Positions 30,413 through 60,229 of a stretch of DNA of 64,000 nucleotides are shown here, one piece after another; position 1 is the stretch's first letter, and each line of letters opens with the position of its first letter. The position numbers and the translations under genes were made by a program. The notes below the pieces were generated by a model, which searched no databases, had not been told where the DNA came from, and was given only the letters and a program-made list of their open reading frames with translations. The DNA lies in the IMG/VR virus record IMGVR_UViG_3300017917_002466, positions 189,665 to 253,664 of that record. The stretch is one strand, 5' to 3'.

Positions 30413-31084
30413 TTATTGTCTTCCCAAAAATATTTTTTGAAAATATTCTAATTGATTATTTACAACTTGAGGGACTTTAGCTAAATAATCACCTTCAACT
30501 GAATACTTATGAAGGTCGACTTCTTCTTGTGATAAGCAAATTCCAACTATTCTTTCTTTCATTTGTGATTCAAATTTATCATTAGGAAGTAAAGCTTTAT
30601 GTAAACCCTTTTCAAAAAACTTTTTCATAATATCTTGCTTATAAATTCCAGCAGCAGCAAATACTCCAATATGTCCAGTATTTGGAATAGAATTGTATTT
30701 GGTCATTGATAATACTTTAGTTGCATAATTTAATTCTCTTGATAAAAAAGGCCCCTCATTAAAATACATAAGGTTCCAAGTTTTATCATCATATAAGAAT
30801 TTATCAAATGATTTCTTTAAAAGCATACTATCTTGCATCAAGAAATAAAAATGTTCATTGGGATATTCTTCATATGCTTTCCATAATGATCCTGCTCCAC
30901 GATGAGGATTTATATAATCTGAAACTATTACGTTTGGATACTTTTTTACTTTTTCTATATAGGTTTTATCATCCGAATTTGAATCATATATTATCGTTCG
31001 TTCGTTTGGATGAAATTGAAATATAGCATCTAAACATATAAAAATTGGACTTCTTTCTGTATATTTGGATGGTATAATAAACAT
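30413..31084 (-). CDS. GT-A-like hypothetical protein
   Basis: IYDSNSDD, FLMQDS, ER..GI. Confidence 0.55.
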   Translation of the reverse strand: MFIIPSKYTERSPIFICLDAIFQFHPNERTIIYDSNSDDKTYIEKVKKYPNVIVSDYINPHRGAGSLWKAYEEYPNEHFYFLMQDSMLLKKSFDKFLYDDKTWNLMYFNEGPFLSRELNYATKVLSMTKYNSIPNTGHIGVFAAAGIYKQDIMKKFFEKGLHKALLPNDKFESQMKERIVGICLSQEEVDLHKYSVEGDYLAKVPQVVNNQLEYFQKIFLGRQ

Positions 31085-32593
31085 TTATCCTCCCATAATT
31101 TTTTTAAGTTTTTCAAACATCCTTTGACCTTCTTCATCATTTTTTTCGGCTATTTTAATATCTTTCCAATATTTCTTATCTAACTTAATATATAAATGTA
31201 CTGTTTTCTCTAACCCTAATATTTCTTCTTTACTTAAATTTGGCATATTAAGTATACTTTCTTTATACCAAGAAAAATTAATTTCATCTTCTGGTGAAAT
31301 ATATCCTCTATCTAAAGCTATTTGTCTTAGTTTAGTTCCAGAAAAAGGTATAAAAGTAAATACATTGATATTGTGATTACCCTTTAATATCTTGGATATT
31401 TTTCTATTCATTTTAATTGTTTCAAATATTAGTTCTCTATTTTCATCTGGTAATCCAATCATGCTATTAATTGTTGGCTTAATACCATATTTTGCCAACA
31501 ATCTAAATCCTTTAAGTACTGATTTATTAGTTAGCTTTTTATTAAGTATTTTAGTTCTAAATTCTTCATCTCCATGTTCTAATCCAACTGAAATAGCTAC
31601 ACAACCAATTTCTTTAAGAAGTTTAGTTTTTCCATCTGTAAAACTATCCAATCTTGTTTGACACCAGAATGGAAGATTAATTTCTTTCTTATATCTTTCA
31701 GCAAAAATTCTAAATTTTTCAAAAGGTAAAGCTAACAAAGTTTCTGAACTTATATAAAGAAAGTTAATATTATATTTTTCTATAATCTCTTTAGAATCAG
31801 AAAAAAATTTGTCTAAACTCTTAACTCTATAATATCGGCCTGACTTTTCTGTTTTAAAGAAAGATTTTAAACCTTCAGCAGCACAATATGAACAAGAAAA
31901 TGGACACCCTCTATCAATATCAAATTGAGCCATTCTAACAATATTACCGTCAAATGGACGATAAAACCTTTCATTATCATAAATTGAAAAATCTGGAGTT
32001 GGAAGATCATCTAAGTTAGATAATTTTCTAGATGGATTTTTAATTATCTTATCATTTTCAATATAACACATATTCATAACTGTTTTAGGATTTTCTTGAT
32101 TCTTAATTCTATTACACAATTCTGGTAAAGCTTCTTCTCCTTCTCCAAGACAAACAAAATCAACATAACCGGACTTAAGTATTTTTTCATATGAAAATAA
32201 AGCTCCAACACCACCAACAACTACTGGTATTTTTTTATCTTTGATTTTTTCTATGAAAGAATAAGATATTTGTATCGTACTATCAACTAAAGTTATAGCT
32301 AAAAGATTTGGTTTATAAGAATTAACTAAGTCTATAAAATCATTATAGATATTTGAAGTTTTTAATGGCGCGATTTCATCTATATTAGTTTTCTTTACAT
32401 GACCTAATTTTTCTCTTATATCATCTTGCTTTTCGTTAATAGATTGATAAGTTGAACAATCAAATAACTTAATATCATATCCGGCTTTTTTCAGACAAGC
32501 GGCCAACATAGCAATGTTACTTGGAACAACTCCAACACGAGGATCATTTGGAAATAGAAATAATACTTTAAATTTTTCAATTGGTTTTTTCAT
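31085..32593 (-). CDS. cobalamin-binding radical SAM protein (paralog of 28905..30410)
   Basis: VVGG, LGEGE, RGCPFSCSYC, GLEHGDE, IGLPDE, FIPFSGT. Confidence 0.9.
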   Translation of the reverse strand: MKKPIEKFKVLFLFPNDPRVGVVPSNIAMLAACLKKAGYDIKLFDCSTYQSINEKQDDIREKLGHVKKTNIDEIAPLKTSNIYNDFIDLVNSYKPNLLAITLVDSTIQISYSFIEKIKDKKIPVVVGGVGALFSYEKILKSGYVDFVCLGEGEEALPELCNRIKNQENPKTVMNMCYIENDKIIKNPSRKLSNLDDLPTPDFSIYDNERFYRPFDGNIVRMAQFDIDRGCPFSCSYCAAEGLKSFFKTEKSGRYYRVKSLDKFFSDSKEIIEKYNINFLYISSETLLALPFEKFRIFAERYKKEINLPFWCQTRLDSFTDGKTKLLKEIGCVAISVGLEHGDEEFRTKILNKKLTNKSVLKGFRLLAKYGIKPTINSMIGLPDENRELIFETIKMNRKISKILKGNHNINVFTFIPFSGTKLRQIALDRGYISPEDEINFSWYKESILNMPNLSKEEILGLEKTVHLYIKLDKKYWKDIKIAEKNDEEGQRMFEKLKKIMGG

Positions 32594-32595
32594 TT

Positions 32596-34011
32596 TTAGT
32601 CCAATTTAATAGCTGACCAACTAGTATCTTTAAATACTAAGATTTTACTTATACCTTTTTCTCTAAAAAATTCGTTAACAGCTTTTTTAACTCCTTCTTG
32701 ATTATAATCGTGACCAGCTAAAATTCCACCCTTTTTAACTTTACTATACCAAGATTCTAAATCAGCTTTAACATATTCATATGAATGGTTGCCATCAATA
32801 TATATCATATCAATAGAATCATTCTTAACTTGTTCACAATATTTTTCTCCATATTCTTTAATCAATTCAACATGAGGATATTTTAAAAGTCTTTCTCTTG
32901 CTTTTTGTTCAATAATTGGCCAATAATTTCTTGGATTTTCACCACCTTCATAAGATAAATCCATCCCCCATAAATCAATTGAAAAAACTTTTTTACAAAA
33001 AATAGCAAAAAGTTCAGTTGAAATTCCTAAATAACATCCAATTTCTATTACTGTTTTTCCTTCCAACTTATAATGATTAATCAAATCTAATAATCCACCA
33101 GTAGTATTTTCTGGTGATCTGACATTAGAATTTGGCCCCATCCTAGGTTCTTTAATAATAGCTTCAATTCTTCTAGATGGTTTATTTTCATCATTACATA
33201 AAAGATGTTCGTACTTTATTAGATTACTTAAAATATACTTTGAACAATTTCTTTCGTCTAAAATTATTTTAGAAGGATTCCAACCAGGTCTTGAAATAAC
33301 ATCTTCCAAATTAGATATTTTTCTATCCATTGAATTTTTATAAAAGTCATTATTATATTCTACGTGTCCAAAAGATTTTAATTTAAGTTTAGCTTTTTCT
33401 GCACCACCTAACCAAGTATAATGCCAACCTGTTACTTTTCCATATTTTTCTTTGTTCACATAAAGAATTTCATCTGTATGATTTTTCCAATAATTCCCAC
33501 TATAACTTCTAAAAGAATCAAAAGAATATTGTTTAAAATAACTATAATTACAAAGTCTTGTTCCACGCCAAGGTTGATTTACTATCGCATCTATGAAATA
33601 AGAATAAAGATCAACATTAAAAACAAATAATTTATTAGCTTGAAAATCATTCTTTAATAATTCTCTAAGTACTTCTGGATTTGGAATTTCATCCAAATCT
33701 GACATAAGAATAATATCATCATCTTTACAATTAACAAGAGATTGGGCTATACTATTTTTATGGTTTACATCTCTATCCCAATGATTCCATTTATTACCCA
33801 TGTCATCTATAAACTTATTATGAATAATTTTATCTTCAAACTTTTTAAACCTATCTTTATTTTCTAAATAATAAAATGGTTTATCGTTTCCTTGAAAAGT
33901 TTTGTTACATTCCCCAATAACAAAATAATCAACATAAGGATCAAGCATTTCCATCCTAATTTCAAGTAAATCTAATTCATTTAGAAAAGGGAAGACATCA
34001 TAAACTTTCAT
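32596..34011 (-). CDS. GT17-like GlcNAc transferase fused to Methyltransf_24
   Basis: YD.F.F.NELDLLEIR...VDYFVI.E, SDLDEIP, GWHY.W.GG; EIG.YLG.S, YIDGNHSY, GG..AGHDY. Confidence 0.88.
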   Translation of the reverse strand: MKVYDVFPFLNELDLLEIRMEMLDPYVDYFVIGECNKTFQGNDKPFYYLENKDRFKKFEDKIIHNKFIDDMGNKWNHWDRDVNHKNSIAQSLVNCKDDDIILMSDLDEIPNPEVLRELLKNDFQANKLFVFNVDLYSYFIDAIVNQPWRGTRLCNYSYFKQYSFDSFRSYSGNYWKNHTDEILYVNKEKYGKVTGWHYTWLGGAEKAKLKLKSFGHVEYNNDFYKNSMDRKISNLEDVISRPGWNPSKIILDERNCSKYILSNLIKYEHLLCNDENKPSRRIEAIIKEPRMGPNSNVRSPENTTGGLLDLINHYKLEGKTVIEIGCYLGISTELFAIFCKKVFSIDLWGMDLSYEGGENPRNYWPIIEQKARERLLKYPHVELIKEYGEKYCEQVKNDSIDMIYIDGNHSYEYVKADLESWYSKVKKGGILAGHDYNQEGVKKAVNEFFREKGISKILVFKDTSWSAIKLD

Positions 34012-42611: not shown

Positions 42612-43196
42612 TTATCTTTTGAACGAATAATAGAAGTCTACTAAACTTCTATCCTTCTTTACTTTTTCAAATACTTCCTTGGAGTCTTTATTGGTTCTTA
42701 TGATTTTGTAATCTTCTACGGGGTTTCTTTCGCCGGTTTCTGATCTTTGCTGGGATTGCTTGATTGCGACTTCTTCGGGAACATCTATGTGAATGAGCAC
42801 TGTTGTAAATCCATTTGCCTTTGCAAGCTGAAGTTTCGCAATAGTTCCATTTAGATTTGCATTAGTACCAGTATGAATGAAGGATTCTTTTTTAGTAAAG
42901 GCTATTGGGAGTTCTTTTTTAAACTGAGAGGTAGCTTTACCGGCGAGTTCTCTTTTGTATTCTCCGCCGCCTATCTTAGAAGCTAAAATATCTACATCAT
43001 AAACTGGTAAGTTACCAACTACTTTCTTTAGAACATTATCAATGAAGTATGTCTTTCCTGAACCAATTCCACCACCAACGGAAATAAAGAGCTTATCTTC
43101 TAAATAGGTCTTCAAGTCGTCAATATTGTTTAACGACCTACCATAAAAGGTATCGCTCTCGTAAAACTCAATAAAGTTATGGATTTGGTAGGTCAT
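42612..43196 (-). CDS. P-loop kinase (zeta-toxin/AAA_33-like)
   Basis: GGGIGSGKT, DVD, SF...GT, GF...LI.I......A; NFIEFYES tag. Confidence 0.8.
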   Translation of the reverse strand: MTYQIHNFIEFYESDTFYGRSLNNIDDLKTYLEDKLFISVGGGIGSGKTYFIDNVLKKVVGNLPVYDVDILASKIGGGEYKRELAGKATSQFKKELPIAFTKKESFIHTGTNANLNGTIAKLQLAKANGFTTVLIHIDVPEEVAIKQSQQRSETGERNPVEDYKIIRTNKDSKEVFEKVKKDRSLVDFYYSFKR

Positions 43197-43593
43197 AAGA
43201 AGAATCCCCTCGCATTGCATCATCTACGGCTAAAGGTTTATAACTCTGTGGTGGTTTTGGTTCTTCCTTTGGAAGTATCTTTACCTTCTCCACCTTATCT
43301 TGAATGTTTCGCAGAAATTTACTCTTTGCTTTATTAATGATTTCGTGAATTCTCTGCTTGACCTTCTTTATATATGAGTTATCACCTTGCATATACTGTC
43401 GGATTTCGTTTCCAACAGCCACATCAAAATCGCCGTAGTTAGGGAATCTTCTTTCAAGATAGTTACAAAGTCTTGAAACAAATGCAGGATTTAAACCAAC
43501 TGAAGCAGACTCTTCCTCTATCAGAAGTTTTACTTCATTGGTGAAAGCTTTGGCTTCGCTTTCTTGAAAATAATGATCTTGAAATTTCTTCAT
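43177..43593 (-). CDS. hypothetical protein
   Basis: MKKFQDHYFQESEA tag. Confidence 0.7.
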   Translation of the reverse strand: MKKFQDHYFQESEAKAFTNEVKLLIEEESASVGLNPAFVSRLCNYLERRFPNYGDFDVAVGNEIRQYMQGDNSYIKKVKQRIHEIINKAKSKFLRNIQDKVEKVKILPKEEPKPPQSYKPLAVDDAMRGDSSYDLPNP

Positions 43594-44540
43594 TATAGCA
43601 TTGTCTTTTCTGAAAGGTATATAGTAGATTCTTTCAAATGACTTTCAAGATTACTTCTTAACCTCTTTATAACTTCGTCTTCATTCTGTTTCAAACAAAA
43701 TGCCGATACAATGAATTCTCTTAGCTGTGCAAAGGTGAAATCCTTTGTCTTCTCAGCCAACTCCATAATCCTCTTTTCATCCTGATGTTCCTTTAGCTTT
43801 GCTTTTAAGTAGGCATATCTTCCAGTTGTTGGTGGATTTCCAATCTCTATCTTCCTATCAAATCTGGAAGCTCTAAGAATTCTAGGAGGAAGTCTATCAA
43901 TATAGTTAGTTGTTCCAAGAAACAATACATTGTTGGTCTGTGCATCACCATCAAAAAGCTCAAGGATAGCGTGTTCTCCATACTTTACAATCTCGTCAAT
44001 GTCTTCCATAATGACAAGAATCTTTCTCTCTGGCTCAACTTCTCTTACAACTTTAAGTGCTTCAACAAGGTCGTGTGCTTCTCTAGTAATGAAAACTATG
44101 TTACCCTTACTTACCATATCTTCCATTGCTAACTTCAAAAGTGCACTCTTACCACTTCCCGGTTGACCATAAAGAAGAACTCCTCTCTTATGAGTGAATC
44201 CATACTTCTTAAAATCATCCTTCAATGTCCAGAAGTTATCAATCTCTTGAAGTATCTTAGTATAACGAGAATCTTCAAAGCGAAGAATATCATCAGTATT
44301 AATATCGTGAACTTCAAAGAAAACACCAGACATATTTCTCTGTATTCTGAAAACACCAGCGGGAATAGTCTTCTCGGTTACTACTTCACCAACAGGCTGA
44401 AAAGAATTACCTTGCACGATATACTTCTTGTAAATCTGCTTTCTCTTACTTGGTTGTGTTGAAAGAACCTTTGGACCAATATCAATTGGTTCAGCCTTTA
44501 AACAGGATTGATTTTCTTTGATAAATTCTCTAAAGCTCAT
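43593..44540 (-). CDS. classical AAA+ ATPase
   Basis: RGVLLYGQPGSGKS, VIMEDID, TTN..D.L...I.R.SRFD second region of homology; MSFREFIKE tag. Confidence 0.92.
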   Translation of the reverse strand: MSFREFIKENQSCLKAEPIDIGPKVLSTQPSKRKQIYKKYIVQGNSFQPVGEVVTEKTIPAGVFRIQRNMSGVFFEVHDINTDDILRFEDSRYTKILQEIDNFWTLKDDFKKYGFTHKRGVLLYGQPGSGKSALLKLAMEDMVSKGNIVFITREAHDLVEALKVVREVEPERKILVIMEDIDEIVKYGEHAILELFDGDAQTNNVLFLGTTNYIDRLPPRILRASRFDRKIEIGNPPTTGRYAYLKAKLKEHQDEKRIMELAEKTKDFTFAQLREFIVSAFCLKQNEDEVIKRLRSNLESHLKESTIYLSEKTML

Positions 44541-44839
44541 ATTAAAACCCCCTTTCCTAAAATATCTTCAACCATCCATCTTGCTCTTGTTTGAATCTTT
44601 GCAATAAGCTCTTCTTTATCTTGAACTACTGCACCTTTCTTAATGGCTATTCCAATTGCTTCAGCAGCTTCTCTTGCCTTTATCATAGCGTTACTTAACT
44701 TTATAACATTTGAATTAAGCAACTTTTGATAGTCTTTTCCTTTTGGTTGTTGTGCCAAAGGGGATTCTATTGGCTCTTCACCAATGGCTTCACCTAGGTA
44801 TCTTTCAGCTTCACCTAGGTATTTTTTGTAATCTTTCAT
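44537..44839 (-). CDS. hypothetical protein with duplicated tag
   Basis: MKDYKKYLGEAERYLGEAIGE; late promoter at 44858-44865. Confidence 0.75.
   Translation of the reverse strand: MKDYKKYLGEAERYLGEAIGEEPIESPLAQQPKGKDYQKLLNSNVIKLSNAMIKAREAAEAIGIAIKKGAVVQDKEELIAKIQTRARWMVEDILGKGVLI
44787..44822. repeat. 15-bp direct repeat, 21-bp period (YLGEA x2)
   Basis: GCTTCACCTAGGTAT at 44787 and 44808. Confidence 0.85.
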
Positions 44840-44857
44840 ATTACTTACCCCGTATAA

Positions 44858-44865
44858 TATTTATA
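44858..44865 (-). promoter_or_regulatory. T4-type late promoter
   Basis: TATAAATA overlapping the stop codon of the upstream gene. Confidence 0.6.
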
Positions 44866-46273
44866 AATTCTTTAATCTTATAATATTAGCTATTTCTTCT
44901 TTTTCTTCGGTTGTTAAAATCTCTGGTGTCCATTTCATTGATTTTAGATATTCCAAATTGTTTCTTATATTAGAAGCTGAAATTTTTTCATCCGATTCTT
45001 CGCCCACTCTACCGAATTCCATAATCCGTACTTTAGAGTATTTATCTTTATGTTTTACAAAATAATCATACTTCTTCGTATCGCCTTCTGTTCCTCCGAT
45101 AAGAACCTGACTAACTTCGTTCTGGTGAGTATCCACCCAATCGTATATATCTTTAACCGGTGTTATTTTACTTAACAATATTTCAACTGGTTTGTTGATA
45201 TGCCTTATATAAACTTCCCATATCTTTTTAGATTGTTCGGCTGTGATAGTTTCTCCTTCTCTCAGCTTATGACCAATAAAAATGATTATCTTATCAGACT
45301 GTTTTGATAGTTGTTCAACTATACTAAAATGTCCTTTGTGTGGTGGTTTAAACCCACCGGCATACAATCCTATAATTCCAGCATCACTACTTTCCCAAAA
45401 GTAATGTTCAACAAAGTTGCCAGAGAAAGCCTGTTTGATTTTATTAATGGCTCCCAATTTCATTTTTTCTTTTGCTGTTCCAACTTCACCAGATTTAACT
45501 GATACTAAAGATTGAAAGGTACCAGGGATTCTTCTTCTTGATCTTGGCTGTTTAACTTGTTTATTAACTGAATCTAATAGTTCATCGAAGCTACTATATA
45601 TGTTATAATTGTGAAACAGTTTTTCCACATCAGGCCAATTAGTTGTAGACCAAACATCTATATGTCCAACATCTCTACTATCTTTAACATCAACGACTCT
45701 TAAAGTTAACTTATTAGAGGAAAGATTAAATTCATACTCTTGATCTTTTTCTAATGCGGGCACTTTTCTAATTCCTAATTTCTTAAAAACAGTATTGTAA
45801 TCTTCTTCTAACAACAACACTTTAGCCAAAGCCACCAGTATGCCTTGTTTATCTGCCGGTAGATTTAGGAACTGTTCTTTGAAATCATATTCCTCTGTGG
45901 ACAAAGCAATGATATTATCTATTTGAATATTACCTTCAGCCCCAACAATAGGATACAAAATCGTAATTATTTCACCTGAATTATAATACTTACGTCCTTT
46001 ATATAGTGAAGATTGGAAAGGAACAATAACTCTATCTGGCATAGATGATACATAATCTATAATTGCTTTTTTGACTGCTTTCTTATCGTTTCCCTTAAAA
46101 TGAACTACTATATCTAAATCACCATAATCATCTTTGGATTTTATTTTAGCACTACCTGTTAATTTGGCATTTTGAAAATCAGGAATATTTTGTAGTACTT
46201 TTCTCTGATAATCAGCAAAAGTTCTATCAACATTGCTTTTTAGTATTCTGGAACCACCAGCAACTCCACTCAT
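44861..46273 (-). CDS. pol-beta-like nucleotidyltransferase fused to an HxGH cytidylyl/adenylyltransferase domain
   Basis: TGS......GDLD and QID; GGFKPPHKGH, SASNIR. Confidence 0.8.
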   Translation of the reverse strand: MSGVAGGSRILKSNVDRTFADYQRKVLQNIPDFQNAKLTGSAKIKSKDDYGDLDIVVHFKGNDKKAVKKAIIDYVSSMPDRVIVPFQSSLYKGRKYYNSGEIITILYPIVGAEGNIQIDNIIALSTEEYDFKEQFLNLPADKQGILVALAKVLLLEEDYNTVFKKLGIRKVPALEKDQEYEFNLSSNKLTLRVVDVKDSRDVGHIDVWSTTNWPDVEKLFHNYNIYSSFDELLDSVNKQVKQPRSRRRIPGTFQSLVSVKSGEVGTAKEKMKLGAINKIKQAFSGNFVEHYFWESSDAGIIGLYAGGFKPPHKGHFSIVEQLSKQSDKIIIFIGHKLREGETITAEQSKKIWEVYIRHINKPVEILLSKITPVKDIYDWVDTHQNEVSQVLIGGTEGDTKKYDYFVKHKDKYSKVRIMEFGRVGEESDEKISASNIRNNLEYLKSMKWTPEILTTEEKEEIANIIRLKNL

Positions 46274-47226
46274 TATATTCTCCTATCTTCAAAATAAATA
46301 TCTTCAAACTTTAGCGATTCGGTTTTATACTTTATAAGTTTAGAATTGTCTGGTAAAAACTTTCCTTTTAATCCAAGTCTATCTTGGTTTTTAATCCAGT
46401 ATTCTTGAAGGTCTTCTGGTATATCTGCTCTTGTACTATCTAATATCTTTAGGTAAGTATCGTACAATTTATTCAAATCTTCTTTAGATAGATTAGCTCT
46501 TACAAATTTTTGTAGCTTAAAATAGTCTTCCAGTATATTTTCGTTTATATCAAACTTATATATTTTGTTTAAAAGTTCAATAGCTTCTTTTGGATTGGAA
46601 GCTGCCATCTCTTGCGTTTCTTTATTCTTCACACCATAATTATGCGAGAAGGTATATCCCTTGATTGCATAAAGGGCTAACATAAGTTGTGTTCTGTGCA
46701 ATCCTTTTACATTACCGCTATATGTCGATGAATAATATGCGAAACTAAGCCAATCAATATTACCAACATTCAAATCTATTTGAACCCAATCTTTGAGTTT
46801 CTTTCCCGAAGAATCGAATTGTGGGAAAGCAAAAAACAAAGAACCACCAATACTACCTTTAGTATCTAAATGAATATCCTTGACTTTTTCAAGAATTTTT
46901 TCTGATAGAGCCACTAAAATAGCTCTTTTCATAATTTGCTGGTCTGTGGAAGTTTTTGACCTTTTCTTAAAATTATTGAAAAGACTATTGATATGTTCTT
47001 GGTCTAAATTCCATTCTTTGATGTTCTTAAAAATATCTTCGGATATAGCCAAGTCTATATCACCAGAAACATCCTTCTTTCCTACTGAACCCAGTGTTCT
47101 AATATCTTTAAAGTATTTCCGAGCTTTAGGAAAAACAGTGGCCAACTCTTCATAGAACTTGGCAAGAGTTGGTTCAATGTTTTCCTTGCGAATCGAAGTT
47201 GTTAAATCAAAAACATTTCCACCCAT
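46273..47226 (-). CDS. pol-beta-like nucleotidyltransferase
   Basis: MGGNVF start, LGSVGKK..SGDIDLA, VQIDL, KG.HR. Confidence 0.8.
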   Translation of the reverse strand: MGGNVFDLTTSIRKENIEPTLAKFYEELATVFPKARKYFKDIRTLGSVGKKDVSGDIDLAISEDIFKNIKEWNLDQEHINSLFNNFKKRSKTSTDQQIMKRAILVALSEKILEKVKDIHLDTKGSIGGSLFFAFPQFDSSGKKLKDWVQIDLNVGNIDWLSFAYYSSTYSGNVKGLHRTQLMLALYAIKGYTFSHNYGVKNKETQEMAASNPKEAIELLNKIYKFDINENILEDYFKLQKFVRANLSKEDLNKLYDTYLKILDSTRADIPEDLQEYWIKNQDRLGLKGKFLPDNSKLIKYKTESLKFEDIYFEDRRI

Positions 47227-47248
47227 TATTAGTTCCTTTCTTTAATAG

Positions 47249-47277
47249 ATAATAACATTTTCTTTTTCAAAAATCAA
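47249..47277 (-). promoter_or_regulatory. possible sigma70-type promoter
   Basis: TTGATT-17 nt-TATTAT; shares AAAAGAAAATGTTAT with the 40802-40830 promoter. Confidence 0.5.
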
Positions 47278-47310
47278 CAAGCCAACCAAATTATTAGTTT
47301 GATTGGCTTG
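47270..47310 (-). terminator. intrinsic terminator
   Basis: CAAGCCAATCAAA-loop-TTTGGTTGGCTTG followed by TTGATTTTT. Confidence 0.7.
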
Positions 47311-47361
47311 TCTTCAAATCAATTCCTCTCTTTTTGTTTATTTCAACTTGAAGCCATTTCC

Positions 47362-49410
47362 TTATCCCTTGAAACCACCTTTCTTATATTCTGGTGGCAA
47401 AGCTGGTGCACTAATCTTCTCTACTTTTTGACCAGTCTTACCCGGCTTAGCTGTAAAGCTTCCCTTTGGAGCAGCCTTGGAAGGAGCCTTTGGTGCACTA
47501 CCAACCTTCTCAATCTTCTTTGGTGGTGCTTTTGGCTTTGCTGTCAATGCTGTTGATGGGCCTTTCTTAGCAGGAGAAGATGGTGCAGATGGAATCTTCT
47601 CAATCTTCTCACCTGGCTTGCTTGGCTTTGCTGTCAACGCTGCTGTTGGGCCCTTGACAACTGGTGCCTTTGGAGCTGGCTTAATTGAAGCAATAGTCTG
47701 ATTGATAACACCTGGCTTAGAAGTTAATCCACCACCTTGAGTAGTTGCCATCTTTGGAGGTGTCAATGCATCTTCGTCAAGATCAAAGTATTTATTAGCG
47801 GCAATCTTTACAAAGCTAAGAGACTCTTCCTGACTTCCAGAGGCTTCTTCATCATCGTCTTCTGATTCCTCTCCCTCTTTTTCATCATCCTCAGATTCCT
47901 TTGGTTTCTCTGCTTCTTCTTCAGCAGGAGCAGCTTCTTCCTCACCACCAAGTTCAGCAGAAGTCTTCTGAAGCAACCATTCAAACGGGTCGCCAGTTCT
48001 TGCCTTCATTGTTCCATATGGCATTTCATCTGCATAGTAATCCATCAATGCCTGATAAAGCTCATCTGATGGATCGTTCTGTGGGTCTGCTATCCAAGCC
48101 TTAAGCTCTTCAAACTGTTCAGGAGAAAGGGCTTTCTGAAGTCCAACTGATCCTAGCTCTTCCTCACCCTTATCACAAGGAACACATTCTTCTGCACCGG
48201 CTGGGCAAGACTTTTCCTCTGCTTTCTCAGAATCTTCTAATTTTTCTGTTTCTTCTTCAGCATTAGGTGAAACTGCACTCTTTGCTAGTTCACCAAGGGT
48301 CTGTTCCATTTCTTCAATCTGCTCAAGATCAAAATAGTTTTCTGTTCCTTCCTTATCAATACAAATAACTTCGTTATTCTCAGTAATAGAATTGACCTTA
48401 TACCACTTGCTTTCAACCTTTACAAGAGTATTGATAAGCTTTTGAAGATCAAGACTCTCAAGTTCAGTAGAACCAATTACACGAACAGGAGCAACGATAC
48501 ATTCTTCTGCATCGCCTTCTTCCTCACCTTCACCGGCGGCAATATCTTCCCAATCAATTTCCCCAGCATCCTCAGGCTCTTCACCTGCATCCTCTGGTTC
48601 CTCGCCAGCATCCTCAGGCTCTTCACCTGCGTCTTCTGGCTCTTCACTAACATCCTCTGATTCATCACCAAACTCATCAGCTTCAGAAACAAGCTTCTTA
48701 TTACTTGAAGTAGATTCTTCTTCAGTTCCAGAAATTTCTTCCTCGGATGCACCGGCTCCCTCTGATTCTCCCTCGGCCGGTTCTTCCTCGGACTCTCCCT
48801 TCTCAACCTTAAATCCCTTGAAAAGATTCTCAAGTGAATCTACAAATGCCTTTGCTTCTTCTTCGTCTTCAAAATCGTGTTCAGACTTTTCAAGACCAGT
48901 GTTTTCAGAAGGCTCAACCGTTACTTTGTTATCCACAACGGAAACTTTTACTACCTTCTCATCTTCTCCTTCTCCACCAACCGATCCTCCCATTTCTGTT
49001 CCAAGTTCCTCAGTTGGCTCTACCTCGTCCATTTCTTCCTTGACTACATCCTTCTTACCTTTCTTACTTTCAGTTTCCATTCCAGTAACAGAAGTACGTG
49101 TTGAACCCTTCTGAACATCTCCTGTATTAATAATAATTTTAACATCCCCTTCTTCTAAAGAGTTTATTTTTTCAATAATATAATTCAAATTTTCTTTAAC
49201 AAAAATAGAATCTATATTTTTAGGAGAAATTTTTGGATTTACAAACTCATTTTGAATTTTAAAGATAGCATTCTTTTTATCAATATATGGTTCGTCAAAT
49301 GCTGCTTTAATTACTTCAATTACTTTATTCCATTTTTCAGAAATAATCTTCTCAGTAGAAGAAACATCTTCTTTATAATTTTCCTTTAAATAGCTTAAAA
49401 ATTCCAACAT
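47362..49410 (-). CDS. large acidic, low-complexity head core/internal-like protein with Pro/Lys-rich tail
   Basis: AGGAG SD before MLEFLSYLKE tag; Glu-rich body; EEPEDAG repeats; C-terminal TAKP..P..KIEK repeats. Confidence 0.75.
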   Translation of the reverse strand: MLEFLSYLKENYKEDVSSTEKIISEKWNKVIEVIKAAFDEPYIDKKNAIFKIQNEFVNPKISPKNIDSIFVKENLNYIIEKINSLEEGDVKIIINTGDVQKGSTRTSVTGMETESKKGKKDVVKEEMDEVEPTEELGTEMGGSVGGEGEDEKVVKVSVVDNKVTVEPSENTGLEKSEHDFEDEEEAKAFVDSLENLFKGFKVEKGESEEEPAEGESEGAGASEEEISGTEEESTSSNKKLVSEADEFGDESEDVSEEPEDAGEEPEDAGEEPEDAGEEPEDAGEIDWEDIAAGEGEEEGDAEECIVAPVRVIGSTELESLDLQKLINTLVKVESKWYKVNSITENNEVICIDKEGTENYFDLEQIEEMEQTLGELAKSAVSPNAEEETEKLEDSEKAEEKSCPAGAEECVPCDKGEEELGSVGLQKALSPEQFEELKAWIADPQNDPSDELYQALMDYYADEMPYGTMKARTGDPFEWLLQKTSAELGGEEEAAPAEEEAEKPKESEDDEKEGEESEDDDEEASGSQEESLSFVKIAANKYFDLDEDALTPPKMATTQGGGLTSKPGVINQTIASIKPAPKAPVVKGPTAALTAKPSKPGEKIEKIPSAPSSPAKKGPSTALTAKPKAPPKKIEKVGSAPKAPSKAAPKGSFTAKPGKTGQKVEKISAPALPPEYKKGGFKG
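48562..48645. repeat. 4 x 21-bp tandem repeat (EEPEDAG)
   Basis: direct reading of DNA and protein. Confidence 0.9.
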
Positions 49411-50224: not shown

Positions 50225-51925
50225 TTATTTATAAGAAACACCTTTCATTCTTTCAATAATAGGATTTAATGTTGTAGCAAAATAAAAACAATCGCCAAAT
50301 ATACCAAAACCAATAATATCACTATTTCTTTCAAGCAAAATACTATATCCATCAAAAGGATCAAAAGTATTAATATTTAATACGCTAATATATGTTCCAT
50401 TAGAATAATAAGTATTAATAGGATATAATAATAACAAATTTTTATAATGTGTCATACTATAACACGAATAAAAATTAGAATTAAACTTTAAAACATCAAC
50501 TGACCTTATAGATTCTACATTAAAGTTTTTAGTATCAATTCTATTAATAATACCATTATATACTTTCGTAAATGAATCGAAAATTTTATGATCAGAAGGA
50601 CTCATATAAATATATCTACCATCAAAAGTAGCACCATAACAAGGACTAAAAGAACTCACCGATGGACATTTAATAGCATCAATATAACTAAAATCTGAAC
50701 ATCTAATTCTCGGAATATATATAGCTGATAATGATTCTGGTTGAGGAAAGAAAATATTATCTGCTAATGGTATCATATAAACATATTTACCATCAGTAAT
50801 AACATTACCAAATGATTTCATATCTGGATTTATAGATTTTAAATCTAAAAATGTAGCTGATCCTGTAAAATTATTTTTATCAATTCTAGCAACTAATCCA
50901 TTATCCATTTCAAATAAAGAATTATAATTTGGTGCTAAATAAATATATCTATTATCTTGTGTCATTGAATTATATCCAACTGCTGATATATTATCAGATT
51001 GAAGGTCTTTAACTACCATTGAAGCTGAATTTCCAAACATAGTTAAATCTATTCTAGCAACTTTACCATATACTAATGGATTAATGTTATCAAATTGTAT
51101 TAATACATAAAGATATTTACCATCACTTAACATATCAATAACATAAGTTAATGTTGGGTCTATATCAGTTAAACTCATTATAGTACAACCAGATATTGTA
51201 AAATTATTAGGGTCTATCCTAACAATAGAATTTTGTTCTCCTGTATTTAAAAAAGCATCATAATATATGTATCTTCCATCTGATGCCATCGCAATAGAAG
51301 CAAAAAATGTAGGTAATATTGCGCTTAAATTAAGTTCTACTGGTTTTCCAAAAGGTATTAATTCTTGTGGTATTGTTGATTTTTGACCTATATCTCCATT
51401 ATAAGTATATCCAGTAATCTTAAATGGTTTAGAAAAGAAAGCCGTACTTCCGCCAAATATTAAAATACCAGTTTGATAATTAAATAGCCAATTACAAGGA
51501 TCAGTGGGAAATATTTCATTATTATCAGCATCATATAAATGAATAGTATAATCTAAACCATACTTATCACTTATCCAATTTTTAATTCTAGTTCCACCTT
51601 CAAAAGCAAAATAACATTGTTGGTTTGCAACAGAAGTATCTTCTGTTAATGCAAATAATACTCTTTGTGATGCTTTACCTGCGCTTACAGCAATATTAGA
51701 ATTAGAATTAATACTATCTACCCAAACTTCATCTAAAGTTGTATTAATAGTAAAATCACCAAATTCTTCGTAAAACATTTTTGAAGATGTTGTTACTCTT
51801 TTATTAATTAATTCTTTAAAAGATAAATCTTCTTGAGTCCACATAATAGGGTCCGATAAAAGTGAAATACCTGAATTATTACCACCATTAGTATATAATG
51901 ACGCATATATATTTATGTTATTCAT
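50225..51925 (-). CDS. virion structural protein with beta-propeller-like repeats
   Basis: W.FNYQ.GIL.F...P..ITGY.Y.G module; repeated DGRYIY/DGKYVY...RID...F units. Confidence 0.65.
   Translation of the reverse strand: MNNINIYASLYTNGGNNSGISLLSDPIMWTQEDLSFKELINKRVTTSSKMFYEEFGDFTINTTLDEVWVDSINSNSNIAVSAGKASQRVLFALTEDTSVANQQCYFAFEGGTRIKNWISDKYGLDYTIHLYDADNNEIFPTDPCNWLFNYQTGILIFGGSTAFFSKPFKITGYTYNGDIGQKSTIPQELIPFGKPVELNLSAILPTFFASIAMASDGRYIYYDAFLNTGEQNSIVRIDPNNFTISGCTIMSLTDIDPTLTYVIDMLSDGKYLYVLIQFDNINPLVYGKVARIDLTMFGNSASMVVKDLQSDNISAVGYNSMTQDNRYIYLAPNYNSLFEMDNGLVARIDKNNFTGSATFLDLKSINPDMKSFGNVITDGKYVYMIPLADNIFFPQPESLSAIYIPRIRCSDFSYIDAIKCPSVSSFSPCYGATFDGRYIYMSPSDHKIFDSFTKVYNGIINRIDTKNFNVESIRSVDVLKFNSNFYSCYSMTHYKNLLLLYPINTYYSNGTYISVLNINTFDPFDGYSILLERNSDIIGFGIFGDCFYFATTLNPIIERMKGVSYK
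50226..50233 (-). promoter_or_regulatory. T4-type late promoter
   Basis: TATAAATA upstream of regA. Confidence 0.6.
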
Positions 51926-51927
51926 AT

Positions 51928-54012
51928 TTAGCTTGCATTATTTAAACCAGTTAATTTAATTTTACCCATAGTAATATCAACTTGTGGTGCGAAATTAAAT
52001 CTACTTCCTATTGTTTTAGGTTTCCATTCCAGATTAGAAGTAGTATTACCAATATCACCTGGTTTAAACGATGGTAATATCCATTTAGAATTATTTAAAG
52101 TTTCCCAAGTTATAATTTGACCAGGAGTTTTTGCTTGTAAATTTGCTATTTGATCTTGTGTTATAGAAATTTCTGAATTTGATCCTTCTAAAATAATTTT
52201 AGTATACTCAAAACCAAAAGGATTATAACCAAAATAACCTTTTATTATATTTAAATTATTTTTAATTTTAAGATTATTCGGTTGTAAATTACTTAAAAAT
52301 CCTAATGATGCATTACTTATTAAAGTATTTGATGTCATATTAACTGTTAAACTTTTAATTGAAGCTAAATCTAATTCAGTCATTCCATAACCATTATTAA
52401 TAGTAATTTTAACATAAGAATCTTTATTATCTTGTGATTCAAAATATATATCGTATGGATAATAATTCATATTACTAACTGTCAATGATAAATTCTGATA
52501 TGGAAAAGTATCTTCTATTGGTACATATGATAACATTCTAATAGTTTGTAAATTTGGTGCATTTAAAGTAAAAATAGCATCGTTTCTATATGATCCAATA
52601 ATAAAATCTTTATTTAAAATTCTTATTTCTGTTGCACTTATATTTACTGTTAAATTTTCATTAGAAAGTATATTTATTGAATCAAAAGTTATAATATTTT
52701 CAGAAAATAAATCTATTGTTGAACTTATTGATGGAAGTGCTATTGTTGGATAATATTGTATTCCAACTCCTGATATATTTCCTAAAAATCTCCATTTAGT
52801 ACCAGTTGCACTAATTTCATCTGGAATAATATTAATTATATTAGATGTTGATTCACCTATATTTTTTGTTTTTGCCAATATTATTTCTGAAAAATCAAAA
52901 GTTATATTATTAGAAATATTATATGGTATTATATTAAATTGCAAAAATCCATAAAAATTAAAACCTGAATATGCTGAAATTATATATCCTGATTCTTTAG
53001 GATAAATTGAAAAAACTTTTTCTTCTCCAAAAATACCTGAACTTGGGAATCCTTCTTTAATAATTAAAGATTTCATATTAACATTATTATTAATAGTACA
53101 ATGACCAATACCATTTTCATTAAATTCAATATCATTTGTACTATCAGGAATAATACCCAAAGACCAATTTAAAGAATTATTCCATAAACCAGATGTATTT
53201 GCTATCCAATAATTTTTAGGTCCAAATTGAAGAGTTCCATTTACTGGATGTGTATATCCTTTTAATCCACCAAGATCAGCGCTTAATGTATAAATATTAT
53301 AAACTTCTTCATCTGATAATACTCGATTATAAATTATTATATTATAAGTATCAATAGATTGATTATTATTAGTAGTTTGGAAAAAATTTCCAATTGAAAT
53401 ATCTGATAAAATAGCGTCATTAAATGGTATTGTATTTATAGGAGTGGAATATATTGTTGATTTATTACTAATGCCATCAATATAAAATTTATATTCTCCA
53501 ATAGAATTTCTTATAACTGTAATTGCGTGAATTCCTAATGGAATTCTGCCTTCCAATGTATAATCAATATATACGTTTTCTTGATATATTTCAAATGGTT
53601 CCCAATTTCCTACTAATATAATTAAATTAACATTTTTTTGACCTTGAGTAATTATAAATTGTAATGACCCAAAATCATAATTTCCAAATGGAAGAAAATT
53701 ACCAGCATTTAAAATATAAAACTCAGCTGTATTAGTAATATTAACTATACTATGAATTGTAAAACCATCATTGCCCCAAATAATTTTACCATTTGTTTGT
53801 AAATATTTTGCTATAATTGTATCAGTTTGGGACGTTAAAAGAATACCATTATCATAAACTAAGTTATTAACCATCGTTCCACTTATATTAGCACTAGGAC
53901 TATAAATTGGAAAAGTAGTTCCTGAAAATGGTGGTGGATTTTGACCATTCTTCAAACATTCCGGAAGAATAGCAAAATTACAACCAGAAGCATTCCAATT
54001 ACCTATAAACAT
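51928..54012 (-). CDS. virion structural protein with LamG/ConA-like domain
   Basis: H...VR....KFYIDG, IG, IYNRVLS.EEV..IY; W....NWS...P....I.F motif. Confidence 0.7.
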   Translation of the reverse strand: MFIGNWNASGCNFAILPECLKNGQNPPPFSGTTFPIYSPSANISGTMVNNLVYDNGILLTSQTDTIIAKYLQTNGKIIWGNDGFTIHSIVNITNTAEFYILNAGNFLPFGNYDFGSLQFIITQGQKNVNLIILVGNWEPFEIYQENVYIDYTLEGRIPLGIHAITVIRNSIGEYKFYIDGISNKSTIYSTPINTIPFNDAILSDISIGNFFQTTNNNQSIDTYNIIIYNRVLSDEEVYNIYTLSADLGGLKGYTHPVNGTLQFGPKNYWIANTSGLWNNSLNWSLGIIPDSTNDIEFNENGIGHCTINNNVNMKSLIIKEGFPSSGIFGEEKVFSIYPKESGYIISAYSGFNFYGFLQFNIIPYNISNNITFDFSEIILAKTKNIGESTSNIINIIPDEISATGTKWRFLGNISGVGIQYYPTIALPSISSTIDLFSENIITFDSINILSNENLTVNISATEIRILNKDFIIGSYRNDAIFTLNAPNLQTIRMLSYVPIEDTFPYQNLSLTVSNMNYYPYDIYFESQDNKDSYVKITINNGYGMTELDLASIKSLTVNMTSNTLISNASLGFLSNLQPNNLKIKNNLNIIKGYFGYNPFGFEYTKIILEGSNSEISITQDQIANLQAKTPGQIITWETLNNSKWILPSFKPGDIGNTTSNLEWKPKTIGSRFNFAPQVDITMGKIKLTGLNNAS

Positions 54013-57235: not shown

Positions 57236-60161
57236 AAATTATAGTATAATAAAAATTAGTTGGTAAATTATCTGATCCTTGTGCTATAAATGTAAATAAA
57301 CTATTATCATTTTCAAAAATCATTATATCAATATTTGATAATGATTTGCGTGTATTAATTGAATTAAACTGTATTATTGAATAACAGTTAAAATTAAATA
57401 AAGGATTATCTTGATTAAAATAAAGTTGTTCTGGTAAATTAACTGTAATAGAATGTACTACTTCATTTGTTAATACCATTCCGTGAACAATTGCAGTTTT
57501 TCCTACTTTAGTATATTTAAAAGGAGCAATATTTGTATTTCCAATTTGTAAAGATGGATTAAGAGTTAATTCTCTCAATGGACCACCAGTACCTCTAATA
57601 TTACTGTTAGGAAAATTAATTTGAAAAGTAATAATATCAACTTTAAAAGACCCTTCTATATATCCTCTAACTTTAACATAACCATTTTCTAAAGAAACTT
57701 CAAAATTTGATGGAAATTCTTCTCCGGTTCCATTTGATGTTGGATTTTGTAATATATTATTAACTTCTGATTTAATATTTGATAATAAATTTTCAATAGT
57801 AGTATTACTATTAATACTTACTGAAATATTTGATTTATTTAAAGATGTTATAGATGATCCGTGTGTAAGATATAAAATAAAAGAAAAAGTTAAATTACTT
57901 GTTGTAGTTCCTACTTGAGCATCTATATTACCTAAAAATAATTCAGAAAGAGTTCCATTACTATTAGTTTTATCTTGTATATAATTTTGGAGATCAGCAA
58001 TTAAAAAAGTTTGAGTAGTATTATTTAATGATCCATCCCATTCTCCAACTGCTACCGATCTCTTTCTCTCATAAAAACCTGAATTTGAAAATGTTGCCAT
58101 AGTAGCATATATGTTATGATAACTACGAATATTTTCCATAGCTATAATTTCACTATCGCTAACAATATTATCAGTTGCACTAATATTTTCTGCTAGAATT
58201 CTTTTTGAAAAAAGATTATTCCAACGAATATTTTGAGTTCCTAAATCACATATTTCATTTGATATTGGCTGTATTGTTGAATCAACATAAATTTTCTTAC
58301 TAATAAGAAATAATTTTGAATTATTATCTAATAAGTCTTGCATTGTTTCTATTGAATTAGCTTTTTCAATAATATCTGTAAATGCAATAACTTTTTTAAA
58401 TCCTGCTCCAACAACTAAATTAAAGTCTCCTGCATATCCAGAATCTTCTACTTTAGATATCAATAAAGCTGTATTATAAGTTGTTCCAATATTTCTTAAC
58501 TCAACAGGACCAAATAATCCGATTTTTCCTTTCGATCCAAGTATAAGCTCAGCAGAAGTTGAAAGATTAGTATTTTGGCTATTAAATAAACCAGGAGACT
58601 TCCTTTCAATTTCATAAACAATATTTTTATGAGTTGCTCCAGTTTGACCAGCTAATGAAGCATATGAAGCTGAAGTATCAAGACCAGCAAAAATGTAAAT
58701 ATTTTCTACATTATATTCTTTACCAAGATTTTTATAATAAGTATTATATATAAGAAGATTTTGTTTTTCTCTCCATAAATCTCCTCCTTTAAAAGCACCG
58801 ATCAAATAAGAAGATTGAATTTCGGAAAAATCAATTATATCAATTCCTCTTAATTGTAAGGTAATTCCAAAAGGGTCTTTTTCTGGTGGAACCGAAGTTC
58901 CTCGAACTCCTCCTATTGTAATACTACCATAATTAACACTAATAGCATGATTATACCAACTAATTACATTAAGTGGAATTATATTCGTTGTATCTTTTGA
59001 TCCTGTATGTGATCCATTTTCAAGATATAATTCTCTAAAACGGTACTCATCTGTTCCAAGAGCAATTGATTGAGTTATTTTTGGACGAATAGATATAGCA
59101 TCTCCACAATATGTATTCCAATTTGCAACATTAAGAATAATATCTGCTCCAATTTTTCCATCAGTACTTTCAGTAACATCATATTGATTTGGACTAATAT
59201 CAATACTATCAAATCTATTATTATCGTAATCCATTCTAAGAATTGGAATACCTGTATCCAAATCTTGTCTAGCATATCTAAGATGCATTGCTGCACTTAT
59301 TTCACTAGTATTTCCATCAAATTGTCCAACTCCAATTCTATTTGGAAAGTATAATCCACCCGGAGAATGTGACCAATAATCAGCAGAAGATGAGAAAAAT
59401 ATTTCTTCCCACGTTGCATCTACTCCACTAATATCTAATTGAATATCAAATTCAAATTGACTATATCCAGTTTCTGTTCTTGAAATTTGTGCTGGAAAAG
59501 CTGATAAATAAGCTTCTCCAAAAAAGACTGAGGTTCCTAATGATGGCGGAGCCTCTGAAGCAAATAAAGCTATCTTATTAAACTTAAAAGAACCTTTACT
59601 ATTATCAATAATACATTTTATTGAACCTCTAAGTTGAGTTAAACTTGGTCCTTCATAAACTGGGTAATAATCACCAGCAGACCAATATTCTGAATATGTT
59701 GAAGGAGAATCTTCAAGAGGAGTAACTCCAGAAACAACTTGAGCATTAGTAGCCGACCAATTAAATAATCCACCACCAACATTTATTGAAGTCCATTCTG
59801 AAGCACTAATTTGATCTGAAAGTGGTTGGTTATTTAAAAGGTTTACAGGAACAGTTGATTTTTGATAAGAATTATATAAAGTATTTGGACTCCATAGACC
59901 AGCACTTGTAATATAACTTTCAGTATTATCAATAGAATATCCATTTTTTCTCCAAATTACTTCACCATATGGTACTAGTCTATGAATACCATCTTCAGCA
60001 ACTTGTTGAACAGAAGACAAAGTACTTGATTCAGTTCTAATATATGGGTCTATTCTATCATCATAAACTGGTACAAAATACTTCAAGTAAATGAAGATAC
60101 CTTCATCCTTTGCATACTTAACGAAATTCAATCCACCCTGTGTTAGCATTACATTTGGCAT
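57219..60161 (-). CDS. tail fibre/baseplate protein
   Basis: LT..G start and F.FN.IALF collar-like domain, DLG....RW..LF repeats, C-terminal YTKVGK...V.G...LP receptor-binding-like domain. Confidence 0.7.
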   Translation of the reverse strand: MPNVMLTQGGLNFVKYAKDEGIFIYLKYFVPVYDDRIDPYIRTESSTLSSVQQVAEDGIHRLVPYGEVIWRKNGYSIDNTESYITSAGLWSPNTLYNSYQKSTVPVNLLNNQPLSDQISASEWTSINVGGGLFNWSATNAQVVSGVTPLEDSPSTYSEYWSAGDYYPVYEGPSLTQLRGSIKCIIDNSKGSFKFNKIALFASEAPPSLGTSVFFGEAYLSAFPAQISRTETGYSQFEFDIQLDISGVDATWEEIFFSSSADYWSHSPGGLYFPNRIGVGQFDGNTSEISAAMHLRYARQDLDTGIPILRMDYDNNRFDSIDISPNQYDVTESTDGKIGADIILNVANWNTYCGDAISIRPKITQSIALGTDEYRFRELYLENGSHTGSKDTTNIIPLNVISWYNHAISVNYGSITIGGVRGTSVPPEKDPFGITLQLRGIDIIDFSEIQSSYLIGAFKGGDLWREKQNLLIYNTYYKNLGKEYNVENIYIFAGLDTSASYASLAGQTGATHKNIVYEIERKSPGLFNSQNTNLSTSAELILGSKGKIGLFGPVELRNIGTTYNTALLISKVEDSGYAGDFNLVVGAGFKKVIAFTDIIEKANSIETMQDLLDNNSKLFLISKKIYVDSTIQPISNEICDLGTQNIRWNNLFSKRILAENISATDNIVSDSEIIAMENIRSYHNIYATMATFSNSGFYERKRSVAVGEWDGSLNNTTQTFLIADLQNYIQDKTNSNGTLSELFLGNIDAQVGTTTSNLTFSFILYLTHGSSITSLNKSNISVSINSNTTIENLLSNIKSEVNNILQNPTSNGTGEEFPSNFEVSLENGYVKVRGYIEGSFKVDIITFQINFPNSNIRGTGGPLRELTLNPSLQIGNTNIAPFKYTKVGKTAIVHGMVLTNEVVHSITVNLPEQLYFNQDNPLFNFNCYSIIQFNSINTRKSLSNIDIMIFENDNSLFTFIAQGSDNLPTNFYYTIIYECEQ

Positions 60162-60199
60162 ATTTCTTTATACTCCTTAAAAACTCCTTATCTTTCAAT

Positions 60200-60207
60200 T
60201 ATTTATA
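60200..60207 (-). promoter_or_regulatory. T4-type late promoter
   Basis: TATAAATA in intergenic gap; AAGGAG SD downstream. Confidence 0.7.
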
Positions 60208-60229
60208 TTTCTTATAGAGTATCAACTAA

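Follow-up and report, generated by a model that had tools for sequence, protein, structure and literature searches.

A putative T4-type capsid targeting signal at N-termini, at C-termini and between enzyme domains in a jumbo relative of phage T4

The stretch of DNA analyzed here, hereafter the window, comprises 64,000 nucleotides and forms the terminal 64 kb (positions 189,665 to 253,664) of the single-contig virus record IMGVR_UViG_3300017917_002466, a genome of 253,664 bp with 33.5% G+C that we refer to as G000. In a block at 42612-49410, seven genes, all on the minus strand, carry a short peptide motif at the positions given by an initial annotation of the window: at the N-terminus of five proteins, at the C-terminus of a nucleotidyltransferase (NTase-A), and between the two domains of a fused protein, NTase-B/HxGH. 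This motif is probably the G000 version of the capsid targeting signal (CTS) of phage T4, placed on predicted packaged enzymes at N-termini, at a C-terminus and between enzyme domains. Coordinates are those of the window unless preceded by G000.

The T4 CTS reads MKTYQEFIAE (10.1101/2021.01.19.427310), in which residues 4 and 7 determine targeting and residues 8 and 10 determine processing (PMC9026906), while the T4 protease gp21 cuts after the Glu of I/LxE (PMC12991175). The motif of G000 resembles this signal, found on IPI-III and Alt and processed by gp21, in being a short propeptide in which two targeting positions, aromatic or hydrophobic, are spaced by three residues ahead of an h-x-E, where h is hydrophobic. 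In both phages the motif is common to otherwise unrelated proteins, the head genes are of the gp20-23 type, and the cargo, predicted in the case of G000, includes an ADP-ribosyltransferase and anti-defence proteins. The T4 signal, however, is N-terminal only and carried by a handful of small basic proteins, whereas G000 has about 20 or more tagged genes, many of them encoding enzymes, and its motif is also internal, C-terminal and duplicated.

G000 carries a T4-type head module (G000 27261-32343) that encodes a gp22-like scaffold (G000 28683-29480), a gp21-family prohead protease (G000 29548-30201; phrog_207, 1.6e-59), a gp23-like capsid protein (phrog_138, 1e-83) and a portal (phrog_237 and phrog_213 among the matches). 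Because of this module, a capsid protein only ~34% identical to cyanophage gp23, and a RegA homologue that adjoins the block, G000 is a distant jumbo member of the T4 superfamily. Megablast found no counterpart of the block in the phage collection. Among isolates, only the Flavobacterium immuto phages have homologues of NTase-A and NTase-B; a gp21-like protease (35% identity, E ~1e-27) is also present in an immuto phage and in the L003 contig, and each of the three lineages examined has both the motif and a gp21-family protease.

The motif, which we call the tag, spans about 8-11 residues, of which positions i and i+3 are aromatic and i+4 is hydrophobic, with a Glu two or three positions further on (MSFKEFIRE, MSFREFIKE, MSFQEYLKE); a second class has one extra aromatic residue, as in MRFEKYYFQE. 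A profile trained on 18 N-terminal tags from outside the block, with the Met column excluded, was run over 399 open reading frames (ORFs; 77,333 aa) and scored against 30 shuffles. At a threshold of at least 3 bits, it returned 19 matches at N-termini against 0.73 in shuffles and four within the final 12 residues against 0.27, a 15-fold enrichment; taken as a class, tags are thus real at either end of proteins. The C-terminal tag of NTase-A scores 2.1 bits, and five C-terminal matches reach at least 2 bits against 0.73 in shuffles. Internally, the profile found a single match of at least 3 bits, the NTase-B/HxGH junction itself (4.8 bits), against 1.93 in shuffles, and a regular-expression test found two against 0.92 expected. 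Since the internal site is not significant by motif counting, it was assessed by homologue comparison instead. Selection acts on the peptide, since the tags keep their residues but not their codons. Whether tags moved recently as DNA proved uninformative, as codons differ among tags and the identity of the FVEHYF segments (17/18 nt) uses the commonest codons. Beside the portal gene (L006), a 154-aa protein (G000 33518-33982) ends with the C-terminal tag ..EFTEYYFNKE and a very basic 55-aa protein (G000 33349-33516) ends with ..SFVEHYFAKKS. The homologue of the latter in the L009 phage has 61 aa and ends with ..SFDSVVASILGE, in the flavour of L009's own N-terminal tags, which read MSLFDNIVNSILKE and similar. 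In the same region, the N-termini of the capsid protein (MSLSLIKKWES; G000 27261-28640) and of the portal protein (MNFDLSKIF..FSKFFRES; G000 30457-32343) resemble the tag or its cleavage motif.

NTase-A (46273..47226, minus strand; 317 aa) begins with an untagged MGGNVF. Its C-terminal end, ..KTESLKFEDIYFEDRRI, contains the tag LKFEDIYFE at residues 305-313 (46288..46314, minus strand), after which only DRRI follows. The stop codon shares one base with the ATG of the NTase-B/HxGH fusion (44861-46273, minus strand; 470 aa), and an AGGAGA lies within the final NTase-A codons. The fusion also starts untagged, with MSGVAGG, and consists of the NTase-B domain (residues 1-282; 45428..46273), the internal tag NFVEHYFWE (residues 286-294; 45392..45418; with the following Ser, NFVEHYFWES, 286-295), and an HxGH, cytidylyltransferase-like nucleotidyltransferase domain (residues 295-470; 44861..45391), the predicted cut lying between E294 and S295. 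In AlphaFold models built on homologue alignments, the fusion has a mean predicted local distance difference test score (pLDDT) of 91.8, with the NTase-B domain above 90, and the sole segment below 50 is 286-296, the internal tag, located between the last helix of the first domain (267-282) and the first strand of the second (300-306). The NTase-A model averages 90.1, and only residues 308-317, where the C-terminal tag forms the disordered tail, fall below 50. By these models, the internal and C-terminal tags belong to no fold. The initial annotation had described both NTases as lacking an N-terminal tag, with the motif at the C-terminus of one and exactly at the domain junction of the other, and both the ORFs and the models agree with it. 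One candidate explanation, that the C-terminal tag of NTase-A is really an N-terminal tag of NTase-B displaced by a frameshift or sequencing error, was rejected: the stop/start overlap with its internal Shine-Dalgarno sequence is conserved in the syntenic contig L011 in a different form (ATGA vs TAATG), six relatives terminate 3-6 residues past the C-terminal tag, and no slippery heptamer was seen.

Homologue comparison places the tag repeatedly at the boundaries of these modules (1850 plus 508 family matches, of which the best 120 and the best 150 were examined). Searching with the HxGH domain alone yielded 31 proteins other than the query, most of them stand-alone with lengths of 176-210 aa. 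An alignment of 25 stand-alone relatives shows an N-terminal tag in 24 (e.g. MKTFKIFYEE, MQTFKQYLTE, MINFKTYFEQ, MKTFKEYYSE), 5-20 residues ahead of the conserved ..LPGGFKPPHKGH strand. NTase-B proteins nearly always begin with MSG[VS][AT]G, and in stand-alone versions a C-terminal tag frequently follows the conserved ..SVKSGEVGT.KG.. helix; several of these proteins stop exactly at the Glu (..SFVSFTEFIDE, ..HFASFGEFLDE). The fusions closest to that of the window, P0155-P0157, retain the internal tag (..SFFEHYFFES, ..SFTEHYFYES), and so does L011.

In NTase-A, G2, G3, N4 and F6 are invariant. Its best 120 matches are mostly untagged proteins of 302-303 aa. A clade of 12 has an N-terminal tag ending in [LI]xE that abuts GGNVF, as in MVSFYKYFFSSTILTE/GGNVF and MISFSDFYKNTGILEE/GGNVF (here and below, a slash marks the putative cut). 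The C-terminal tag is absent from most homologues, and yet it is kept throughout the clade of the window protein: its seven closest sequences (70-77% identity) are all tagged after ..KYKTE (..MNFSEYYFEE.., ..ISFSDHYF.., ..VGFIDIYYE..) and form one clade with a support of 95 in a tree of 81 NTase-A domain sequences, on which at least 10 N-terminal and at least seven C-terminal changes of tag state are needed. A profile search (508 matches, E <= 1e-3) also found the NTase-A domain within polyproteins of 444-1549 aa, in the orders HxGH-A, HxGH-A-B, tag-A-B and A-tag-HxGH.

Counting over cluster representatives with at least four residues ahead of GGNVF, the residue directly before it (P1) is Glu in 37/40 and Met in the other three, while P3 is I or L in 31/40. 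Ahead of the NTase-B start SG[VS][AT]G, P1 is Glu in 22/22 and P3 is L, I or V in 22/22; these cases include 12 internal A-B junctions (..TLNE/SGSAGG) and a five-residue propeptide, MILLE/SGVAGG. The start Met of split genes thus appears, at the sequence level, interchangeable with the [LIV]xE of fused ones, an alternation that fits modules delimited by a gp21-type protease, which G000 encodes. The junctions also follow the flavour of their lineage. The aromatic fraction at the three hydrophobic positions of N-terminal tags is 0.62 in the G000 lineage (G000, L011, L016) and 0.05 in immuto, with aromatic tags in the former and aliphatic ones in the latter; correspondingly, the junctions read F.EHYF.E in the G000 lineage, whereas an immuto junction, ..KVAQTLSEA.., is close to immuto's own N-terminal MKLAQLLQEA. 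A second immuto junction, ..EVFESFFPK, resembles the L009 N-terminal tag MSKKFNTLVESFFPT. In the immuto loci L001-L005, the fusion runs on, at residues ~470-1078, into two HExxH domains (HEMIHH, HEIEH) with no significant Pfam match, and the L003 fusion has an extra module of ~170 aa after the tag-like ..LSSYLQEALSE.

These comparisons bear on several expectations of the initial annotation. The homologues it proposed to look for, with an N-terminal tag ending in xxE directly before GGNVF, do exist, as the P1 counts show, and the HxGH domain was indeed found as a separately tagged gene. The tagged stand-alone and polyprotein homologues support the description of the tag as a movable module. The proposal that the native starts of the NTases must stay free fared less well, in that N-terminal tagging is tolerated; what is conserved is the mature N-terminus, since the tags sit such that cleavage would regenerate G2 or S2. 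Taken together, the arrangement suggests that the tag is a module whose function does not depend on its position, carried by a set of enzymes encoded either by separate genes or as polyproteins.

Some observations weigh against a CTS that works away from the N-terminus. In T4, the signal has been shown to function only at the N-terminus, and the C-terminal propeptides known from T4 Alt and gp21 are not known as targeting signals (PMC9026906). The single internal match in G000 is one of a kind of which about one per proteome is expected by chance. Most NTase-A homologues, including those of immuto, have no tag at either end, and are either packaged another way or unpackaged. Finally, an upstream h-x-E/S site present in relatives (..TFAE/S..) is lost in the window (..AFSGN..), so that NTase-B would keep the tag.

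Three other explanations compete with a capsid targeting signal. The internal and C-terminal motifs could be relics, that is, former N-terminal tags of downstream genes that shifts of stop and start codons have left as neutral linkers or tails, with NTase-A then being unpackaged or packaged via a partner. The fluid gene boundaries, with the same modules split or fused in several orders, are in keeping with such an origin, as are the Met that precedes some C-terminal tags (..ESMNFSEYYFEE and ..PKMESFRSFF) and the overlap of the NTase-A stop with the NTase-B start. We nonetheless regard relics as unlikely, given that 7/7 clade members, at 70-77% identity, retain the C-terminal tag with substitutions that preserve the motif, that C-terminal matches are enriched genome-wide, that several of them end exactly at Glu, and that the unrelated small basic protein is C-terminally tagged in G000 and L009, in each case in the flavour of its own phage.

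The tag could also be a genuine shared signal for something else, such as another assembly, degradation or localisation, or reflect a constraint on translation initiation. Many tagged proteins have no assigned function, and an N-terminal position could result from selection at the mRNA level. This appears quite unlikely, however, as the tag has a counterpart for each determinant of the T4 CTS, ends in the motif that gp21 cleaves, keeps its residues while its codons vary, occurs away from initiation regions, accompanies a gp21-family protease in 3/3 lineages, and marks a set of proteins that resembles known injected effectors, e.g. an ADP-ribosyltransferase like T4 Alt (PMC5512222). That both NTase motifs are chance matches in an AT-rich, Phe/Tyr/Glu-rich proteome is what the internal counts taken by themselves would allow, and we consider it very improbable. 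The two motifs stand in adjacent genes of a tagged block, exactly in the sole disordered segments at module boundaries; they are conserved in the nearest relatives and replaced elsewhere by lineage-specific tags or LxE sites, and both this conservation and the counts of Glu before the module starts make coincidence hard to sustain.

If the tag is a CTS, then by analogy with T4 we infer core binding, encapsidation, cleavage, ejection and the roles of the enzymes as follows. The tag would anchor the precursor to the scaffolding core as the gp23-like shell forms round it, and the gp21-family prohead protease would then cut after the tag Glu ([LIVFY]-x-E/). The cargo would remain in the head and, together with the DNA, enter the next cell by ejection. 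NTase-B would share one tag with the HxGH domain fused behind it, and NTase-A would use its C-terminal tag (..YFE/DRRI). The fusion would split at E294/S295 (..YFWE/SS..) into the HxGH enzyme and NTase-B, the latter retaining the tag as its C-terminal tail, while NTase-A would lose DRRI at most, or its whole tail if the invariant ..KTE/S were also cut. In this way, the family X-like enzymes would keep their invariant N-termini, and the N-terminally tagged relatives would regenerate the same ends by precise cleavage.

In the literature searched, capsid targeting signals are described as N-terminal only. The CTS itself, gp21 processing, the multi-site processing of giant-phage ejection proteins and polyvalent packaged proteins are already known; new here are a short T4-type tag found internally and at C-termini, gene boundaries interchangeable with protease sites, and a conserved nucleotidyltransferase trio as predicted cargo. 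A more ambitious interpretation, to which we give slightly less than an even chance, is that the T4-type CTS is truly position-independent, working at the N-terminus, internally and at the C-terminus, that a large group of aquatic phages with gp21-type head proteases can delimit cargo by gene boundaries or protease sites interchangeably, and that the trio is injected. In that case, the HxGH enzyme and the two family X-like NTases would constitute an unrecognised injected enzyme system, active from the outset of infection on nucleotides or nucleic acids. A tag that works anywhere would generalise the 30-year-old T4 rule of the CTS as an N-terminal propeptide and provide a simple sequence rule by which genomes alone would suffice to predict the proteins that uncultured T4-like phages inject. 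Applied to G000, this rule would already mark the NTase trio, a kinase, an AAA+ ATPase, an ADP-ribosyltransferase, a CCA-adding enzyme, acetyltransferases and a Thoeris inhibitor as proteins that enter the cell along with the DNA. All of these would precede any phage gene expression, which is relevant to the ways in which phages forestall host defences. Such a tag would also give T4-style packaging vectors more design options, because cargo intolerant of N-terminal extensions could be tagged at the C-terminus.

Portable loading signals are familiar from other shells. The cargo-loading peptides of encapsulins are short and portable, usually C-terminal and sometimes N-terminal, and load enzymes into an HK97-fold shell; they bind the shell protein rather than a scaffold, undergo no proteolysis, and their cargo is not delivered to another cell. 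Among phages, the ejection and inner-body proteins of SPN3US and phiKZ are matured by a gp21-like protease at x-x-E sites, some of them at several, and their propeptides have been proposed to target the prohead (PMC5694885); these propeptides, in contrast, are mostly longer than 100 residues, N-terminal, and without a short portable consensus tag. For DarB of phage P1, a short terminal signal suffices for entry into a myophage head, but no consensus is found among Dar proteins, the signal is N-terminal only, and no protease-site logic is described (PMC9024508).

The closest parallel in domain content is offered by the polyvalent proteins of phages and conjugative elements (Iyer, Burroughs, Anand, de Souza, Aravind 2017), which combine 2-15 effector domains and are predicted to be packaged and to reach the recipient cell together with the DNA (PMC5512222). 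Their Pol-beta NTase, ADP-ribosyltransferase (ART), GNAT and peptidase domains recur here, and they too have been proposed to be cut into active pieces (PMC5512222). The NTase-B/HxGH fusion of the window is a two-domain version; its relatives reach 1549 aa, and those of immuto add HExxH. The difference lies in how the pieces would be separated. For polyvalent proteins, autoproteolysis by their own zincin domains is discussed (PMC5512222), whereas here the boundaries carry the motif of the head protease and each module can be found as a separate tagged gene as well. No processing peptidase domain of their own (MPTase or another zincin) was found by Pfam in the proteins of the window.

The models of NTase-A and NTase-B resemble family X DNA polymerases. 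In Foldseek searches, the best matches of NTase-B were Pol lambda, Pol beta and TthPolX (E ~1e-7) and those of NTase-A were Pol beta and Pol mu (E ~1e-5), with a probability of 1.0 over ~220-240 aligned columns, and both proteins conserve GS..DxD and a third Asp (D56/D58/D151 in NTase-A, D52/D54/D119 in NTase-B). TM-scores (template modelling scores), by contrast, are only 0.3-0.5 and identities 10-17%, and neither protein has the 8-kDa or any other N-terminal domain. NTase-A has no Pfam assignment, and its profile gave no meaningful match against the sequences of solved structures, so that it is placed by fold search only. The two NTases are distant paralogues.

The HxGH domain belongs to PF01467 (27.4 bits, cut-off 21), with PPHKGH and ISASNIR motifs, invariant G19, H20 and R142, and a confident model. 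A profile search of solved structures returned remote matches, in which archaeal NMNAT (7.7e-07) was about equal to PPAT. The label "NMN adenylyltransferase" in public annotations is unproven for this putatively packaged domain, because the match to NMNAT is remote and the genome holds a separate untagged NAD salvage set. The latter lies just upstream of the window (G000 180323-186675; L024) and encodes a NAPRTase, an HxGH adenylyltransferase-like protein, an NAD synthase (NadE) and an isochorismatase-family nicotinamidase-like protein; an NAD-dependent DNA ligase is encoded at 406-2331 of the window. The linkage of HxGH, NTase-A and NTase-B persists in any order, split or fused, which argues that the three work together.

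The five remaining proteins of the block, a kinase, a 138-aa protein, an AAA+ ATPase, a 100-aa protein and an acidic protein, have the ORFs and N-terminal tags ascribed to them by the initial annotation, and all lie on the minus strand. The P-loop kinase (42612..43196; Pfam AAA_33 2.3e-07, Zeta_toxin 2.5e-06) probably starts at the Met at 43196 (MTYQIHNFIEFYES), with the tag NFIEFYE six residues downstream (~43158-43178); an alternative, longer ORF from 43223 overlaps the upstream gene. Its homologues are tagged at the N-terminus as well (MYSFEQYY.. in L011, MISFLNYY.. in L016). The 138-aa protein (43177..43593) opens with MKKFQDHYFQE (43561-43593; 9.1 bits by the tag profile), and its L011 homologue with MKFAEHYFKED. 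The AAA+ ATPase (43593..44540; PF00004, 6.4e-16) begins with MSFREFIKE (44514-44540) and its 68% identical L016 homologue with MSFTQYLKE; a C-terminal tag that had also been read in this protein, LESHLKES..YLSE, is unproven, being weakly tag-like, low in score and not kept in L016.

The 100-aa protein (44537..44839) has the N-terminus MKDYKKYLGEAERYLGEA, in which the cleavage motif YLGEA is doubled; Tandem Repeats Finder reports the underlying repeat at 44787-44826 (period 21 bp, 1.9 copies, 94% matches), in agreement with the 21-bp duplication noted in the initial annotation. The acidic protein (47362..49410; 682 aa) starts with MLEFLSYLKE (49381-49410), and an AAGGAG lies 8 nt upstream of the start at 49410. 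It has syntenic homologues in L011 and L016; no Pfam or PHROG family was found for it, and the ESM Atlas returned unnamed viral clusters only. Within its gene, 21/42-bp tandem repeats at 48559-48670 encode about five copies of EEPEDAG, and its C-terminus consists of basic, proline-rich repeats (..KP..P..KIEK..). Pfam and PHROGs likewise gave no match for NTase-A, the 138-aa protein and the 100-aa protein. A strong terminator-like hairpin of 15 pairs followed by a T run (47276..47312, minus strand) separates the acidic gene from NTase-A. L016 (an IMG/VR contig of 137,849 bp) and L011 have other tagged genes between the acidic protein and the AAA+/kinase genes, L016 being without the NTases and L011 without the AAA+ gene. 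Since different tagged genes occupy this interval, the locus behaves as a variable cargo island, like the internal-protein loci of T-even phages.

Further tagged genes occur elsewhere in the window. A first tagged block (3644-14155 and 15617-18413) contains about 15 consecutive minus-strand genes that begin with a tag. Among their products are two GNAT acetyltransferases (10170-11029), the Thoeris inhibitor Tad6 (8953-9477; 1.4e-36), an ART-PolyVal ADP-ribosyltransferase (8402-8956) and a CCA/poly(A) polymerase that has an HD domain (6981-8405). These other tagged genes are effector-like, and by analogy with T4 Alt they are the kind of set that would be expected of proteins co-injected with DNA (PMC5512222).

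Outside the tagged genes, a family of ~300-aa ORFs with the N-terminal ..KVHGNKYDYS.. is represented in the window (16173-17093, plus strand) and at four further sites (G000 32345-33349, 51419-52318, 59770-60711, 187642-188406). Conserved genes separate these scattered ORFs, some of which lie close to the portal and the terminase, a distribution that would fit homing endonucleases; one member has a weak treble-clef zinc-finger match. At G000 ~87,000-96,000, short, spurious-looking ORFs in the crude gene call suggest a large tRNA gene cluster. A long stretch of sugar and modification genes (14364-15548 and 18497-40334) includes several glycosyltransferases, a lysine-2,3-aminomutase-like radical SAM protein and two B12-binding radical SAM enzymes (28905-30410, 31085-32593).

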